DNA from: Oopsacas minuta
Taxonomy: Eukaryota > Animalia > Porifera
Reading direction: 5' to 3'
NCBI GenBank assembly: GCA_024704765.1
Contig: JAKMXF010000318.1
Span: 304,159-368,158 of the forward strand
Length of the DNA: 64,000 nucleotides
Of the stretch, positions 50,387-57,061 are shown piece by piece. Positions within the stretch are counted from its first letter, which is position 1. Every line of letters starts with the position of its first letter. The notes beneath the pieces are model-generated. The model was not told the origin of the DNA, ran no database searches, and was given only the letters and a program-made list of their open reading frames with translations. The translations under genes and the position numbers were made by a program.

Positions 50387-51313
50387 TTAATTAGGTTGAC
50401 ATTGCTTAAGTATATTAGGATAGGTTTCCATTCTAAGGTTTTTACTACCAATGTCCCACAACGCTGCTGGAAATCCGTCAAACTTCTTTATACCCCTGTC
50501 TGTTGTATTTATAGTCCCACTAGCTCCCATAATTCCCTTGGGGTCCATCGCGATAAGAGCTACCATGAAAGTGCTATTATTTCTATTAACCATATCTTTA
50601 ACAACTTCCTCACACGCTAGCTGAGGGCTTAATCCTTGATACCGCATCAACATTATAACATGGAAGCATGGACAGTATTGCATTATGATGTCACCATTTC
50701 CAGTAGCACAACATGCGCCATACTTATTGTCAGCATAAAATCCATTCCCTGAGAGAGGGCAGTCTCCTACTCTACCCACCTCTTTCCCTAGAATTCCGCT
50801 GGTAGAAACACCACATGCTAAGTCTCCCTGTTGATCTAGAACAATCATCGAGATGGTGTCATGACTAGGAGGAGCAATAGGTAGAGATGGCTCGGTAGGA
50901 AAGTTCACGATTTGATCAACTTTTGGGCCAGATTTAAGTAGATCTTCATGTGGCTCCATTAGAAAGCCCTGAGTTTGTGCGAACGCTGTGGCTCCTGCTC
51001 CTACGAGAAAACTGTGTTTGGACTTCTCTAAGACACTACAAGCTACACTCAGAGCGTTAGGACAATGCTCTAGAGCACCCACGGCTCCTATCTTACAGTC
51101 TGACCCTCTCATAACTGCCCCGTCATATTGAGGAAATCCTGATGCATTTGGGAAGTTTCCACGACCAACATACCTCGGTCCTAGACTCGCATCGTTTTCT
51201 ACGATTGTAATTCCAGCTTTCAGCGCTTCAATAGAACTCCCTCCTTTCTCTATCACGACAATAGCAGCGGATACTGCCTGATATCCGAATGGCCAAGTAG
51301 CTATACAAGCCAT
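50387..51313 (-). CDS. Glycosylasparaginase (AGA)-like Ntn hydrolase, asparaginase type 2 family
   Basis: IATWPF, YDGAVM, GAVGAL, FLVGAGATAFA, autoproteolytic HDTISM (Thr nucleophile), STSG...GRVGDCP, CATGNGD. Confidence 0.85.
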   Translation of the reverse strand: MACIATWPFGYQAVSAAIVVIEKGGSSIEALKAGITIVENDASLGPRYVGRGNFPNASGFPQYDGAVMRGSDCKIGAVGALEHCPNALSVACSVLEKSKHSFLVGAGATAFAQTQGFLMEPHEDLLKSGPKVDQIVNFPTEPSLPIAPPSHDTISMIVLDQQGDLACGVSTSGILGKEVGRVGDCPLSGNGFYADNKYGACCATGNGDIIMQYCPCFHVIMLMRYQGLSPQLACEEVVKDMVNRNNSTFMVALIAMDPKGIMGASGTINTTDRGIKKFDGFPAALWDIGSKNLRMETYPNILKQCQPN

Positions 51314-51495
51314 CTACTTATCAGATCTTAGATAATAAATATTAACCAAGAATTTAAATATTTGTAAGATATTAAATGCTGTGTAATTCTAATATGCAAG
51401 GCTCAATCCAGAATAAATGAATATACAAATTTACAGAGTCTGCGATACTAAAAACTAAATATAATCCATCTCATGCAAACTAGAGTCAATCAGAA

Positions 51496-54400
51496 CTAAC
51501 AAGTAAAGTTGTAGTACTGCTCCTGCAGATCCATGTCAGTGTTAGTTCGTTGGTTAATAATTTCTAACTTGCCGTGAGCAGAAAGAAGTTTTTCCAAAGG
51601 TATTTTCTTCTTCGCGAGTAGTAACTTCACTCCAGCATCTCCCCTCTTTCCTTTCCTCTTCAGCTCGGGCTCCAGCTCCTTCACTTCTTGAAGGAAGATA
51701 TAGTGTTCCTCCTTCTGTCTGAGTGTCACCATAGAACGTCGCATAAGTGCTTCAGTCTTTTGGAGATGTTCTAGCGCTTCTTCATTTCTCCCCTCCTCGG
51801 CTAGACTAGCAGCCATGTGTATAGCTCCCAGTGCTAATATAGCAATGTTAACGCTGCCATCCTCTGCTGGATTCTCTGAGGTTATCTCTTGGAACTTGGA
51901 TATTACACGCAGACACTTTGAACCATCCTTAAGTTGATAACTAATCTGTACTTGAAATGGAACTTGTTTGAGTTTGTTTGAAACTCCATCTTTCATTTTA
52001 TATTTGAAACTGATATCACTACTCCTAGTCGCATTACCGACAGCCTTTGTTAGCGCTATGGAGTGTGTGTCAGCCTCTCCCTCGAAACACAGATTTGGGT
52101 GTAGGAAGAATTTAACATCTACGTTAGATGCAATGGTCGGGTTTTGGCTGATAAGTCTCAGTTGTCGCATTAACTCCATCGGATGTAGGATGTTAACAGT
52201 TCCATTCGTTTTAGCAGCACATTGAGATAAATATTCCATCGCGCATTCTTGTCCTTCGATTCCAATTATGGAAATGGTACTCTCACTGATCAATGCTTCT
52301 CTTCCAATGTCAACATAGAATTGGACGTCCCCTGCCCCTCCCGTATTGAGAGATCCAACCCCAGAGTTTGGTTCCCCGTCTGTACAAATAATTACTTCAG
52401 CGCCTGGGAACTTCCTTGAGATTCCAACTGACGTAGCCAGACCAGGACCCAGAGCTGTGCCTCCACCCTCTGTAATGGATCCAATCACTTTCTTGAGAGA
52501 TTCAAAAGATGATTCAATCGGCAGGAATCCTGTTTTCATAGCCAGCTCAGTTCCCGCCTTTAGAAGAGATTGCATGTCTGAGTTGTTAGCTGATGAAGTT
52601 ATTGCATTAGAAGATCCATCGCCCAGAATCCTAACGGAACTACTGAACACGACTACACACACTCTTTGCTTGGGAGTTTCTATTAACATGCGCTCTAGCT
52701 GTCGGAGAATTGCTTGCTTGATACACTCCATACGAGAAATATTATCTTTAAAGTTTTCCCCTTCACGGAGTCGCTTCCACTCACTTTGCAACTTAGGCAG
52801 TTGCATAGTGACACCCATTGATCCAGACACGTCTATACAGTAGATAACCAGTTTGTTGCTGTGTGATATTTGTGGAGTTCCGTCATCAGTTGCAGTTGCC
52901 TGTCCAGGCACAAGAATGTAATCATCTAGCTCAGACAGATTCGTCGTGTTAACATTATTCTCTAGGGTATTATCAGTAGCACAAAACTCACAAGTCCATA
53001 TATGGTCAGATATAATAGACGTAGAACTGAGAGCAACCTGACATGAGCTGCAGTAGGAAGGAATCTGTATAACAATATTCTGATCGTCTAGACTCCCAAG
53101 TTTGATAGCTACAAGGTTAGAATCTGCTTTCTTCCTCCTGACTACTCCTTTTTTCTCCTTCTTAAGTTTGTCTTGCTCTTCTTTGTACAGTTGACCTACT
53201 GACTTGTCTACTGTAATGCTCTCTGATTCTACATTAGATACTACTGAGTATTTGGAATCAGTTCTAGTTAGAGTTATATTGAAAACGAATGCGTTAACCA
53301 AATTCGATTTCTCCTCCCCTGATTCCAGACCAGAAGCATTCTTACAGAAAAGAGTTTTGCCTACTTTATCAGCTCCCAGGACCAACACCCTACAAGGACC
53401 ATCTTTCTGTTGAGAGGCAAGATGGGAGTTAAGTATAGTTTCAATAGGTATATCATCATTTTCTTTGAATAAGAGAGATATCTCTTGATAGCTTGCACCT
53501 AATTCTTTAGCCAGATCTTGAGCAGGAGTTTGGTCAATCTTCTTTAACTGATCTTCACACTTATTGCCAACAATAAAATACTTTTTGTTTTGTATATTAT
53601 TTTTGATAGCTTCTAGTTTGGCTACCTCTTGTAATGAGACTAATGTAGTACCATCAGTGACGTCATACATAAGTATAATGTTTGGAGCTAAATCTATGAG
53701 CTGTAGTAGAGTGCTATGGTCTAGAGCAGATAGAACTTCCGATTTGACATCAAACAACTCGAGGGGGCAGCTGATTGGTTCTTGTGATACTGATTGCTGA
53801 GAAGATTTTCCCTTTCGCTTGAATATTGAAGAAATAGAAGAACTGAAGCTTCTCTCAGCGCCTTTGCCCTCATTAGCAGGGGTAGTAGTCTTATAAGAGG
53901 ACTTATCATCCCTGACACCTGAGGGCAGATTACACCCTATCTCACCCAATGGCATAGATACAATCTTGCGGTAAGAGTCCTCTATTGTGGGATCATAGTC
54001 CTGTACGAATATACCTTGAACATAACGGATTGAGAGAGAAGACTTACCGACCCCTCCTGATCCTAATATCGCTAACTTATATTCCTTTCCTTTGAAAGGA
54101 GTTACTCTTAACAATTCAAGAAAAGCTTGTTCTACATTTACACCAGTTTTTGCTGAAGTTTCCATGTAAGGAATTTTCAACTTGTCAGCTACTTGCTTAG
54201 CTTCTGAGAAAGTAACTACACGATTATTTTCAAGATCTGATTTATTTCCTACAAGAACAGCTGGCACTTGAGGTGCGGATTTTATCCGAGCAGTAAAGGA
54301 GTAGAGATTCTCTGCTTCCTGAAAAGAATTACTGTCAGTTATAGAAAACACGAAGAGGAAACAATTAGATACTCGCATGTACTGATCTCTCATAGCAGAA

Positions 54401-54624
54401 AATTCTTCTTGTCCTGCTGTGTCCAAGATATCTAGCATTATGGGTTCCTGATTACCTCCCTTCTTGAAACCAGAAGTCCGAAACTTTTCCTGATATTTCT
54501 CCTCTTCTTGCTTATGTTCTTGCTCTCTTCGCTCAGTGATTGTTAGCCTCGCTTCCTCCTCGAGTGCGTACTCGAACTCATCTTCTGCAGGTGCGTGTAG
54601 TTTATTACCAGCGAATAACATCAT
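51496..54624 (-). CDS. Circularly permuted Ras protein (cpRAS) with a second degenerate cpRAS, Sec23/24-type zinc finger and VWA domain
   Basis: Motif order DTAGQEEF (G3), GNKSD (G4), ETSAK (G5), GSGGVGKS (G1), YDPTIED (G2); second copy GNKCE, EISL, GADKVGKT; CSSC..CEFC; YCIDVSGSM; TDGEPN. The track start 54651 is TTG; ATG is at 54624. Confidence 0.92.
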   Translation of the reverse strand: MMLFAGNKLHAPAEDEFEYALEEEARLTITERREQEHKQEEEKYQEKFRTSGFKKGGNQEPIMLDILDTAGQEEFSAMRDQYMRVSNCFLFVFSITDSNSFQEAENLYSFTARIKSAPQVPAVLVGNKSDLENNRVVTFSEAKQVADKLKIPYMETSAKTGVNVEQAFLELLRVTPFKGKEYKLAILGSGGVGKSSLSIRYVQGIFVQDYDPTIEDSYRKIVSMPLGEIGCNLPSGVRDDKSSYKTTTPANEGKGAERSFSSSISSIFKRKGKSSQQSVSQEPISCPLELFDVKSEVLSALDHSTLLQLIDLAPNIILMYDVTDGTTLVSLQEVAKLEAIKNNIQNKKYFIVGNKCEDQLKKIDQTPAQDLAKELGASYQEISLLFKENDDIPIETILNSHLASQQKDGPCRVLVLGADKVGKTLFCKNASGLESGEEKSNLVNAFVFNITLTRTDSKYSVVSNVESESITVDKSVGQLYKEEQDKLKKEKKGVVRRKKADSNLVAIKLGSLDDQNIVIQIPSYCSSCQVALSSTSIISDHIWTCEFCATDNTLENNVNTTNLSELDDYILVPGQATATDDGTPQISHSNKLVIYCIDVSGSMGVTMQLPKLQSEWKRLREGENFKDNISRMECIKQAILRQLERMLIETPKQRVCVVVFSSSVRILGDGSSNAITSSANNSDMQSLLKAGTELAMKTGFLPIESSFESLKKVIGSITEGGGTALGPGLATSVGISRKFPGAEVIICTDGEPNSGVGSLNTGGAGDVQFYVDIGREALISESTISIIGIEGQECAMEYLSQCAAKTNGTVNILHPMELMRQLRLISQNPTIASNVDVKFFLHPNLCFEGEADTHSIALTKAVGNATRSSDISFKYKMKDGVSNKLKQVPFQVQISYQLKDGSKCLRVISKFQEITSENPAEDGSVNIAILALGAIHMAASLAEEGRNEEALEHLQKTEALMRRSMVTLRQKEEHYIFLQEVKELEPELKRKGKRGDAGVKLLLAKKKIPLEKLLSAHGKLEIINQRTNTDMDLQEQYYNFTC

Positions 54625-54710
54625 AAATCTAGAATAAAATAGAATATTCAAGTTTAACTAATGTATACTTATTTACAAAAAGCAAGGTTCTCATTATATA
54701 CAAAAGTATG

Positions 54711-55139
54711 CTAACGCTTCTTCATCTTATTCTGTATGTTATATTTATTCACAGCCAGAGTACTGCTAACAATGTGTTTCGCAAATTGCTTATTTATCCT
54801 GGGAATTGGTTTCTGAGACCATCCTACCGCGCCCATAGTAACAGCACGCTCTTTTGCATGCTTCGTCTCCAAAAGAATAAGTCTAATGGCTTCAGCTCTC
54901 TCTTGCTTTTCCACAGTAGCTTCTTGACTCAATATATTATAAGGGGTATCTGGGTTATCATGATATTGTGTGATCTTCTTATCTGTTTTAATACATTTTG
55001 ATTTTAAGTGATATTTCTCTCTTTTGGATAGTGAAGAGTTCGTATTATGTTTCTTTTGGGATATAATTTTTGGAATATTTGGAGTATATTTAGCTGTTCT
55101 CTTACAATCATCTTGTCTAGATTTTGCTCTAAACGACAT
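54711..55139 (-). CDS. Protein resembling the POLR1D isoform-2 product (not the AC19 polymerase subunit)
   Basis: EAIRLILLETKHAKERAVTMGAVGWSQKPIPRINKQFAKHIVSSTL resembles the recalled human KAIEELLKEAKRGKTRAETMGPMGW..NKRFLINTIKNTL. Confidence 0.7.
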   Translation of the reverse strand: MSFRAKSRQDDCKRTAKYTPNIPKIISQKKHNTNSSLSKREKYHLKSKCIKTDKKITQYHDNPDTPYNILSQEATVEKQERAEAIRLILLETKHAKERAVTMGAVGWSQKPIPRINKQFAKHIVSSTLAVNKYNIQNKMKKR

Positions 55140-55174
55140 ATAAAGCTAGCCTCAAAATATCAATATTATTAATA

Positions 55175-55507
55175 CAGTAAAACCTCCAAAAGGTGAACAC
55201 CCTGCGGACCAGCCAAAATATTCACTTTTGAGGTGTTCACTTTTCATGACCGGAACAATTCAACTGACGATAACCAGAGATTTCTAAAATTGTTATTTAT
55301 AGGACCTCCATGTTTACACAAATGTGTGAAAGCATTGTACAGGCAAATATGTTATCTCTTTTGCCCATTGTATGAGGAAGCCTCTAGTATATTGTGAACC
55401 ACATCATCAAACATCCCTGCTTTCACATGATAAAAAAGCTGACAGCCAAGTTAAAAATCTGGCAGATAAACCGATGTTCGCTTTTAAGAGGTCATGGAGG
55501 TTTACTG
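55175..55507. mobile_element. MITE-like remnant, Tc1/mariner-pogo type
   Basis: Left end TA|CAGTAAAACCTCCAAAAGGTGAACACC; right end GATGTTCGCTTTTAAGAGGTCATGGAGGTTTACTG|CA, i.e. imperfect terminal inverted repeats; internal subterminal inverted copy GGTGTTCACTTTT; no transposase ORF. Confidence 0.55.
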
Positions 55508-55618
55508 CAGTTAAACATAGAATTATCAAATATTGGTGAGAGTAAGAATACAAAACAAACATACGTGCATTTGATTAAACTTTACACAGTAATAAAATCC
55601 AGCGTAAACATTAAATAT

Positions 55619-57061
55619 TTAAGCTAGTTTCTTTTTACTTTTCATGAATAGCGTACCAAATAGCAGTTGGAATGCTCCGATTAGGACCCATACAACTGTT
55701 ATGTAATGTCCAATGTAATATACACTAGCCCATGCACGAAATATCTTTTCAGGGGTGAGGAGTAGAAAAGCAAACCCATTGTACTCATAGGCCCGCCAGG
55801 CACAAAGAAAATCAAGAACTAGCCATACTTTCTCTGTACCCTTAACTCTAAGAGGCTGGGTAAATCTTATGAAACAGTACTGTGCTGTAATGCAAAACAT
55901 AAACATGAAGAATGCTATGTAATATCCTAAATTCAATCCATGCCAGTAAGCAGATAGTGCGAATGTAACCAAACGACCAAATGTTCGGTTAGGAAAGCTT
56001 TTGTAAATATAATAGTAGAAGAAAGATTGAACAGTCATGTTCCAGTGCTGGAGGGGGCCGTCAATCGTTGTGCTTGTCTCAATCTCCCAAACTTCCAAAT
56101 TTTCAACTGTTTTGTAGTCTACAGTGTTATCTTCTGTTTTCGGGTTACAAGTTGGGCCAATTCCCGGTCTGCATTTAGCGGATTCAGGATAGGCGCCTAA
56201 ACCAGCTAAAATGCAGGAAGCAACAGAGATCGTCCATGCTATATAAAATCTCCATCGAAAAGCAACACAATAAGGAACAAAGTAAGCCAATCGAAATAGA
56301 GCACCCCATTCATGTGCATAATACTCTTCTGTACCGACAAAGTCGAACGGAAATAGTTTTGCAAGTATCAAATGGACTGATATATACAAGGGCAAGTAGA
56401 ATATGACTTTAATGAGTCCGTGTCTGTAAGGAATCCTGTAAAGATTTGGATTACATATCATATCATTATATGTCTTAGCTCTGAAGAAAGGACCAGTAAA
56501 GAGACCAAGGAAGCAATACGAGAAGCACGTATATTGGAAGAATCGAGATAACAGACTCCCTTGCTGGTGATCTAGGAAACGCGAATAGTTATTGGGGAAT
56601 AAATCAATTTTAGAGAGAGGACCGGATAAATATTCCCGTGTGTCAGCAGCCAGAGAGACTAAACGAAGTGTTAGCAATAATTGAACTGCATTAGCTAGTT
56701 TTGAGAATGGAGGCAGACCGAAAAGATAGGAACATCTAAAAAAAGTTAGGTAACCAAAAGACCAAATAAAAGTTGTAATTGTGAGGTAGGAAGAATTATG
56801 AAATATTTCGTGAATCAGGAATGCAATGACTATAGTAACTATAGAATGTAGGACTTGTGTGCCTGACATTAAATAAGTAATAACAAATCCTATCAAACCC
56901 ATATACAACTGCTTTAATCCTTTATGACTTATGAACCTGTTAATCCATCCCAGAGGGAGACACAGAAAGAGAAAGGATATGTAGAGGTAATCATCTTTGT
57001 AACCAAACGCATCACTCAAACTTTCACCAGAAAGGATAAAATTTGTCAAACTAGCTAGCAT
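55619..57061 (-). CDS. MBOAT7: Lysophospholipid acyltransferase 7 (LPIAT1)
   Basis: GLFTGPFF, RWRFYIAW..AGLGAYP..K.RPGIGPT, WNMTVQ, SAYWHG (catalytic His); multiple TM helices. Confidence 0.9.
   Translation of the reverse strand: MLASLTNFILSGESLSDAFGYKDDYLYISFLFLCLPLGWINRFISHKGLKQLYMGLIGFVITYLMSGTQVLHSIVTIVIAFLIHEIFHNSSYLTITTFIWSFGYLTFFRCSYLFGLPPFSKLANAVQLLLTLRLVSLAADTREYLSGPLSKIDLFPNNYSRFLDHQQGSLLSRFFQYTCFSYCFLGLFTGPFFRAKTYNDMICNPNLYRIPYRHGLIKVIFYLPLYISVHLILAKLFPFDFVGTEEYYAHEWGALFRLAYFVPYCVAFRWRFYIAWTISVASCILAGLGAYPESAKCRPGIGPTCNPKTEDNTVDYKTVENLEVWEIETSTTIDGPLQHWNMTVQSFFYYYIYKSFPNRTFGRLVTFALSAYWHGLNLGYYIAFFMFMFCITAQYCFIRFTQPLRVKGTEKVWLVLDFLCAWRAYEYNGFAFLLLTPEKIFRAWASVYYIGHYITVVWVLIGAFQLLFGTLFMKSKKKLA

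Follow-up and report, generated by a model that had tools for sequence, protein, structure and literature searches.

A CPRas1-type gene of the glass sponge Oopsacas minuta encodes two permuted Ras domains in tandem, the second of them degenerate

Introduction

The CPRas1 or cpRAS-VWA proteins were described by Elias and Novotny in 2008 as proteins of 840-970 amino acids (aa) that are composed of one circularly permuted Ras domain (cpRAS), a 'poorly conserved putative linker' and a C-terminal half that is conserved; tandem cpRAS domains are not mentioned in that survey (PMC2430557). Many invertebrate members of the family carry the annotation 'circularly permutated Ras protein 1'. This work describes a family member encoded in a stretch of 64,000 nucleotides of the Oopsacas minuta genome (assembly GCA_024704765.1, contig JAKMXF010000318.1, positions 304,159 to 368,158 of the forward strand; hereafter the window), in which an intact permuted Ras domain (D1) is followed by a second, degenerate one (D2). 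The family itself is already known, whereas a tandem of cpRAS domains with D2 as a putative pseudoGTPase is apparently undescribed: in the literature searched, neither a tandem cpRAS nor the putative D2 pseudoGTPase is described, and no paper was seen that gives CPRas proteins a function.

Results

The gene and its product

The gene is a single-exon coding sequence (CDS) on the minus strand, and its features are listed in Table 1. The open reading frame (ORF) that contains it (51496-54651) translates without internal stops, and a second ATG, at 54621, is the position that matches the orthologue starts in the alignment. The cpRAS-VWA gene is single copy in the assembly (61.46 Mb in 365 contigs), where the remaining search matches are ordinary small Ras-type ORFs of ~180-250 aa. 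Orthologues of equal length were found as single genes in five other assemblies.

Table 1. Features of the CPRas1-type gene in the window; residues are numbered from the ATG at 54624.
Feature	Window positions	Strand	Residues	Remarks
CPRas1-type CDS	51499-54624	minus	1-1042	single exon, 1042 aa from ATG at 54624
N-terminal segment	54454-54624	minus	1-57	three short strands and a long helix, pLDDT 85-94
D1, circularly permuted Ras domain with all motifs intact	53950-54453	minus	58-225	order G3-G4-G5-G1-G2
Ser/Lys-rich disordered linker	53779-53949	minus	226-282
D2, degenerate circularly permuted Ras-like domain	53260-53778	minus	283-455
Connector after D2	53140-53259	minus	456-495	strand pair and Lys/Glu-rich helix leading into the core
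Sec23/24-type zinc-finger region	52945-53139	minus	496-560	Cys 525, 528, 545, 548
VWA / Sec23-24 trunk domain	52135-52944	minus	561-830	MIDAS-like DVSGS 598-602
Sec23/24-like core, beta-sandwich and helical domains	51499-52134	minus	831-1042
Stop codon TAG	51496-51498	minus

An intact and a degenerate permuted Ras domain

D1 displays the motifs DTAGQ (68-72), NKSD (127-130), TSAK (156-159), GSGGVGKS (188-195) and YDPTIEDSY (210-218), and thereby the Ras-family G domain of G3-G4-G5-G1-G2 order with a TIE-type G2 that characterizes cpRAS-VWA proteins. The Pfam Ras match on the protein is strong (1.5e-56) and split over three stretches. On a cpRAS hidden Markov model (HMM) built from 108 D1 domains, D1 scores 257 bits, and it is modeled with a predicted local distance difference test (pLDDT) value of 89-98 in the full-length AlphaFold model. 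D1 thus lacks none of the residues that a Ras-type switch would be expected to need for its work.

The motifs of D2 are FDVKSE (291-296), NKCE (354-357), EISLL (381-385) and GADKVGKT (417-424). G3 is replaced by DVKSE and G5 by ISL; a G2 Thr motif of the PTIE type is absent from D2, and the place of switch I/G2 is occupied by an invariant GEEKSNL (436-442). The P-loop (GADKVGKT) and the guanine-specificity motif NKxD/E are retained, the last NKxD position being Asp in three of the seven orthologue clusters. Other residues have taken the place of the switch I Thr, the Gly of DxxG, the catalytic Gln and the SAK motif in all seven clusters, which amounts to the conserved degradation of G motifs (here the G2 Thr, the G3 Gly/Gln and the G5 SAK) by which pseudoGTPases are recognized. 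D2 also carries Asp/Glu and Lys/Arg at the positions that match Ras G12 and G13, which in Ras are classic sites of hydrolysis-impairing substitutions. A preliminary description of this DNA had proposed tandem permuted Ras domains, the first intact and the second degenerate; all motifs that it listed are present, and the domain boundaries agree to within a few codons.

Sequence profiles relate D2 to D1 and to small GTPases in general. D2 alone matches Pfam Ras with an E-value of 2.5e-8 (34.1 bits, above the cut-off of 21.6 bits) at profile positions 72-151; a match to Roc, at profile positions 1-37, comes next, and this succession is the permuted order. A D2 profile of the seven orthologues was aligned to D1 by hhalign with a probability of 97.7% (E 8e-12), collinear over 150 columns, at a sequence identity of ~19%. 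The cpRAS HMM detects D2 in every glass-sponge orthologue (5e-8 to 5e-12). Searched against all PDB sequences, the D2 profile gave 499 matches at E up to 1, and the best 60 of these 499 are all small GTPases; Rab3, Rab1 and Sec4 match at 2e-9 to 1e-7 over β4 to α5. The best match is EhRabX3 (1.3e-14), on which the profile runs from β4-α5 of the first domain into the P-loop of the second, and it can span this inter-domain junction only because the junction mimics the permuted order.

Predicted fold of D2

A full-length AlphaFold model was built on 108 relatives (mean pLDDT 84.9, predicted template modeling score 0.79), and in this model the helices and strands of D2 repeat the order of D1 one for one. 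When D2 was modeled alone and compared with known structures using VIA, GTPases made up almost all of the 50 matches listed, a clearer result than that of Foldseek. Canonical Ras/Rab chains match at Z 8-8.8 over 116-123 residues at ~3 Å; DiRas1, Rab6, Rab28, Gem and Rheb align, with their own residues ~50-175, to residues 8 to ~133 of the D2 model, from β3 to α5. Permuted GTPases of the YlqF/YqeH type align to residues 25-178 of the model, over the α5-β1 junction and into β1-α1-β2 (Z 7.3-9.6), and the YlqF-type alignments with Z 8-9.6 take in 132-139 residues. Canonical GTPases over β3-α5 together with permuted ones across the junction form the pattern expected of a permuted G domain. On the Pfam, hhalign, PDB-profile and structural-neighbor matches, D2 is judged to be a real G domain, the fold that pseudoGTPases have, as had been anticipated for the second region.

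The tandem also contains an internal path in canonical order, from G1-G2 of D1 to G3'-G4'-G5' of D2. The two halves could thus swap partners, as the preliminary description had proposed, and form a canonical-order G domain, with the outer halves pairing or staying unfolded. The sequence order creates this path, the disordered linker of 57 residues is long enough, and the family tolerates both orders, as its canonical-order relatives in Archamoebae show (see below). However, both halves of D1 are modeled at the high confidence given above and match 158 single-domain relatives that have no partner at all, whereas D2 modeled alone folds with its own β1-α1-β2 and aligns to YlqF-type GTPases across α5-β1. 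Joining the intact G1-G2 of D1 to the degenerate G3'-G5' of D2 would moreover wreck the sole working active site, and we consider such a swap distinctly improbable.

Purifying selection on D2

Ratios of nonsynonymous to synonymous substitution rates (dN/dS) were estimated from three orthologues with unsaturated synonymous divergence (dS 0.33-0.44) and amount to 0.145-0.191 for D2, 0.164-0.289 for D1 and 0.083-0.133 for the core. Among the orthologues, 55 of the 173 positions of D2 are invariant, including G417, VGKT (421-424), NKC (354-356), SEVL (295-298) and the GEEKSNL motif. D2 is under purifying selection at a level similar to D1.

This constraint could also mean that D2 is still active, as an unconventional GTPase or another NTPase. 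The P-loop G-x4-GKT is invariant, NKC followed by D/E is conserved, the dN/dS is as low as that of D1, and RGK-type GTPases with diverged G motifs retain catalysis (PMC5593906). Against such activity stand the replacement of the switch I Thr, the DxxG Gly, the Gln and SAK in every orthologue cluster and the charged residues at the positions of Ras G12 and G13, which make an active D2 unlikely.

Distribution of the tandem form

A set of 180 domain-carrying relatives was gathered with two full-length queries and scored with the cpRAS HMM. One cpRAS domain is present in 158 of them. Sixteen multi-domain relatives belong to the sponge's own clade and form seven clusters with 62-75% identity to the window protein, and two protist proteins from Logan assemblies, P0097 and P0131, are true tandems outside this clade. 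The glass-sponge tandem is therefore not without parallel, the two protist proteins being a further tandem lineage, most likely of separate origin. Five relatives from Archamoebae with split cpRAS HMM hits have a domain of canonical order, not a tandem. The relative of the calcareous sponge Sycon has a single cpRAS domain.

In the public model of P0008 (1058 aa, from Pecten maximus), a partial cpRAS (profile positions 54-167) opens the protein and a complete one follows the VWA core at residues 810-975; two neighboring CPRas genes have probably been merged here, so that P0008 does not look like a true tandem. The same kind of error, or a collapsed duplication in the assembly, could in principle have produced the sponge tandem as well, but we regard the chance of such an artefact as practically negligible: the sponge ORF is uninterrupted, the same architecture, length and neighbors recur in seven clusters of <90% identity from several independent assemblies with contigs of up to 2 Mb, and D2 is too dissimilar from D1 to be a recent assembly duplicate.

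In the alignment, the D2 block (sponge residues ~282-480) faces gaps in nearly all of the 101 other relatives, and the distance from G2 to the zinc finger is ~310 aa in the window protein versus ~100-140 aa in other members. A word-based search with D2 alone, a type of search limited by length and shared words, matched only the sponge clade. When 1.84 billion representative proteins were searched exhaustively with the D2 profile (HMMER), the sponge cluster (1e-107) and one fragment of this cluster (1.6e-30) were retrieved and nothing else better than 1e-17, the match at 1e-17 being an unrelated multi-G-domain protein. Later matches of at least 450 aa are all devoid of VWA and zinc-finger motifs, and most have several G domains. 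D2 is restricted to the glass-sponge clade and tandem cpRAS is not the norm of the family. Since the single cpRAS is a descriptive trait of the known members and not a requirement, the window protein was filed as a variant member.

The preliminary description had assigned a single cpRAS to each protein of the family, in line with both the published account (PMC2430557) and the survey presented here, and its expectation that the tandem is not already the norm in animal homologues was borne out by the same motif and domain counts. The family can no longer be called rare, as the description had it: relatives are now found in Amoebozoa, Heterolobosea, some fungi and a large number of marine invertebrate phyla. 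Single-domain cpRAS-VWA proteins were seen in the basidiomycetes Ramaria rubella (P0167) and Auricularia subglabra (P0179); the 2008 survey listed no fungi among the taxa with a cpRAS domain (PMC2430557).

Evolution and topology of the family

Trees were built with FastTree and SH-like supports; they have no outgroup and their deep nodes are weak. When the C-terminal core is used for the tree, holozoan sequences are the ones with which the sponge clade groups, and P0097 and P0131 lie in a distant protist clade adjoining the single-domain protein P0132. Both tandem clades thus each adjoin single-domain proteins (SH-like support 0.83 for the sponge clade and 0.99 for the protist one), and two independent tandem duplications are most likely, as the parsimonious reading. 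The second copy decays in both lineages, starting with G3. The D2 of P0097 retains G1, G2, G4 and G5 with a shortened switch II devoid of DxxG, and the D2 of P0131 is more decayed, having lost the G1 Ser, G2 and G3. Both P0097 (L001:74-3457; run ERR11260139) and P0131 come from GC-rich, transcript-like Logan contigs.

Alternatively, the tandem could be ancestral, with the linkers of the other members representing an eroded D2. All family members have a linker between the cpRAS and the zinc finger (PMC2430557), and a second tandem lineage does exist among protists. Yet the linkers of single-domain relatives are only ~100-140 aa long, give no second-cpRAS signal with the cpRAS HMM even at E 10, and do not align to sponge residues 282-480. 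The two tandem clades, each beside single-domain proteins, are also far apart in the core tree, so that an ancestral tandem would need many independent losses. An ancestral tandem is therefore very improbable.

The Archamoebae proteins P0141, P0161 (Pelomyxa schiedti), P0166 (eukprot m51a1_g14012), P0143 and P0145 have their Ras domain in canonical order, with G1 at ~60, G2 at ~84, G3 at ~107, G4 at ~166 and G5 at ~196. They share the N-terminal MEFGS, a Cys-rich zinc-finger region and the VWA core with the rest of the family, and three of the five display the full four-Cys pattern. These proteins form one clade (support 1.0) that is sister to two permuted proteins (0.956), and the m51a1 dataset also holds a permuted paralogue, P0142. 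Their canonical order may be either the ancestral state, a re-permutation or a domain replacement. On the cpRAS HMM their Ras domains score 226-238 bits versus 193-219 bits for ordinary sponge Ras/Rap, a gap that is too small for HMM scores to decide between descent from a cpRAS and replacement.

A Sec23/24-like core around the G domains

The C-terminal half of the window protein is conserved and holds the VWA / Sec23-24 trunk that characterizes cpRAS-VWA proteins. The four zinc-finger Cys are each at least 90% conserved in 108 relatives, in agreement with the family pattern. Pfam matches to this half stay below their cut-offs: zf-Sec23_Sec24 (E 0.0078), VWA_2 (1.5e-4; 22.8 bits versus 27) and Sec23_BS (0.0028), with the Sec23/24 models scoring 16.6 bits against a gathering score of 25 and 18.6 bits against 33.5. 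Several relatives carry precomputed PF04810/PF04811 matches.

The Foldseek and VIA lists of the full-length model are filled by Sec23/24 and VWA chains. The zinc finger, trunk, beta-sandwich and helical domains match Sec23/24 in order (Foldseek E 1.8e-23 to 1e-18, 540-640 columns), and VIA aligns Sec23/24 chains at Z 22.6-24 with 466-481 residues, from model residue 1 to ~1015-1026. VWA structures match residues 585-832 at Z 16-21 (VIA). The VIA alignments begin at model residue 1 for Sec23a, Sec24, Sec24b/c, archaeal ArnB, VWA2 and 4fx5, and near residue 585-590 for plain VWA domains. Together with the confidently modeled N-terminal strands, the Sec23/24-type alignments from residue 1 onward suggest that these strands are part of the core, and in the models the G domains appear to be inserted between them and the zinc finger. 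A gelsolin-like domain is absent, as the protein ends at residue 1042 in the helical region and Sec23a aligns only to residue 617 of 699. The C-terminal gelsolin-like domain of Sec23 carries the Arg finger for Sar1. Because this domain is missing, the window protein was not filed as a Sec23/24 protein but only as sharing their core.

The N-terminus of the family, called poorly conserved, opens with a well-conserved MEFGS..VY followed by an acidic EFEY, and the motif is modeled at pLDDT >90. Between the domains, the linker is the least conserved region (45% mean identity, many gaps); of its 57 residues, 13 are Ser and 6 are Lys, and its pLDDT drops below 50 at residues 239-280. The connector after D2 has a strand at 458-461 and a helix at 476-489, with a mean identity of 56%.

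Genomic neighborhood and C-terminus

MBOAT, POLR1D and Asparaginase_2 genes flank the CPRas gene in the window and in related assemblies. The gene order MBOAT-POLR1D-CPRas-Asparaginase_2 (window 50387-57061, minus strand; loci L002 and L003) is kept in related assemblies, only POLR1D, CPRas and Asparaginase_2 are seen at the shorter loci L010-L012, and in one related assembly an adenylate-kinase gene is inserted. All genes of this neighborhood lie on one strand and are apparently single exon. The C-terminus of all sponge orthologues is YY-N/D-F/Y-T-C (window 51499-51516, minus strand, residues 1037-1042); its terminal Cys is invariant and the sequence is not a CAAX box.

Discussion

We propose, with a probability of about 80%, that the window protein is the single glass-sponge orthologue of the CPRas1 family (cpRAS-zinc finger-VWA), in which the cpRAS was duplicated in tandem within the gene and D2 was kept as a degenerate pseudoGTPase. 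The duplication would have taken place before the sampled glass sponges diverged. D1 would have remained a standard switch of the Ras type in which no catalytic motif is missing. D2 would have retained the fold of a G domain together with its P-loop and guanine-specificity motif, lost the elements for gamma-phosphate sensing and hydrolysis (the switch I Thr, the DxxG Gly, the Gln61 equivalent and SAK) and acquired two new motifs, both invariant, on the face that once held the switches: D-x-K/R-SEVL and GEEKSNL. As read from these motifs, D2 would be a pseudoGTPase that no longer cycles and is probably constitutively nucleotide-bound or empty. That these motifs are so strongly conserved suggests that this face binds something in a fixed manner; frozen in this way, it probably offers an interaction surface to D1, the Sec23/24-like body or a partner.

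A number of observations weigh against this proposal. The pLDDT of D2 is only 52-79 within the full-length model, and the model of D2 alone is of low confidence (mean pLDDT 60.9). Foldseek matches of Rab/Ras to the latter have marginal E-values (4e-3 to 1e-2) and are outranked by some Rossmann-like folds that are unrelated, in part because a sequential aligner covers only about half of a permuted domain when it is compared with canonical GTPases. In the domain tree of D1 and D2, D2 branches at the midpoint root on a branch too long to place, so that its origin from D1 rests on adjacency, the shared permutation and parsimony. The glass-sponge identity of the ENA assemblies is derived from similarity and synteny, not from labels. 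Finally, the intact P-loop with NKxD would leave room for a real, unconventional activity of D2.

The label of pseudoGTPase, which the preliminary description had already attached to the second domain, fits the loss of the catalytic motifs but calls for some reserve: as the P-loop and NKxD/E vary little or not at all, D2 may still bind nucleotides. In the classification of PMC5593906, in which the class depends on nucleotide binding, the motif profile of D2 suggests a resemblance to class ii pseudoGTPases (nucleotide-bound, inactive, Rnd-like) rather than to class i. The pseudoGTPase domains pG1 and pG2 of p190RhoGAP, like other pseudoGTPases, combine a Ras-like fold and degraded G motifs with a position beside a working GTPase domain (PMC5593906), and pG1 of p190RhoGAP-B is a structural neighbor of the D2 model (Z 6.9). 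The p190 domains, however, belong to class i, with neither a P-loop nor nucleotide binding, whereas the sponge D2 keeps the P-loop and NKxD/E and is permuted. EhRabX3 of Entamoeba histolytica (PDB 5c1s) likewise has two small-GTPase domains in one chain, one of which is devoid of several G motifs (PMC5593906), but its domains are Rab-like and of canonical order, and a Sec23/24-like body is absent. The YlqF/YawG (YRG) GTPases have circularly permuted G domains and are the top structural neighbors of the D2 model across α5-β1; they differ in their G4-G5-G1-G2-G3 order, do not belong to the Ras family and are ribosome-assembly factors (PMC2430557).

The closest relatives remain the CPRas1 proteins themselves. 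The window protein is a full-length homologue of named members (E 1e-172 to 1e-116), with which it shares the permuted Ras domain with TIE, the four-Cys zinc finger and the VWA / Sec23-24 trunk, and it differs from them in an extra block of ~230 residues that holds the second, degenerate cpRAS. The protist proteins P0097 and P0131 have the same cpRAS-cpRAS-zinc finger-VWA layout with a degraded second domain, but this domain is without specific similarity to the sponge D2 (E 0.3) and the proteins fall in a distant clade of the core tree. With the COPII subunits Sec23 and Sec24 and their GTPase Sar1, the window protein has in common the zinc finger, trunk, beta-sandwich and helical domains and the association with a small GTPase; in the window protein, however, this GTPase is fused in cis, it belongs to the Ras family rather than to Sar1/Arf, and the gelsolin-like domain is missing. 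The suggestion of a coat-like module with a Sec23/24-like zinc finger and VWA and its own GTPase holds up at the structural level, where the core is more complete than had been supposed, but the structure shows no coat function. The presence of both G domains inside a near-complete Sec23/24-type core sharpens the hypothesis of a coat- or adaptor-like subunit with its GTPase in cis.

A more far-reaching view, which we offer as speculation and think rather unlikely to hold as a whole, is that the family displays canonical (Archamoebae), permuted (most members) and tandem-permuted (glass sponges and one protist lineage) G domains on one Sec23/24-like scaffold, the tandems being a living example of the duplication step by which a permutation is made or undone. 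D1 and D2 might then be a built-in couple of GTPase and pseudoGTPase, in which the D2 face regulates D1 or docks it on the body, and the protein a self-contained, switchable coat-like module.

CPRas is listed as a potential component of the last eukaryotic common ancestor in a 2026 survey (PMC13393502), and CPRas proteins are possibly ancient eukaryotic members of the Ras family. Within this family, a duplicated and degenerate copy that has long been kept under selection is a natural experiment, and the independent repeats of duplication and decay suggest a recurrent solution. Few polypeptides are listed as combining a GTPase with a pseudoGTPase, and the sponge protein extends this list by a permuted case. 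The new invariant motifs of D2 lie where the switch regions were, and the surface that they mark, which would have to bind something, could lead to the partners of the family.

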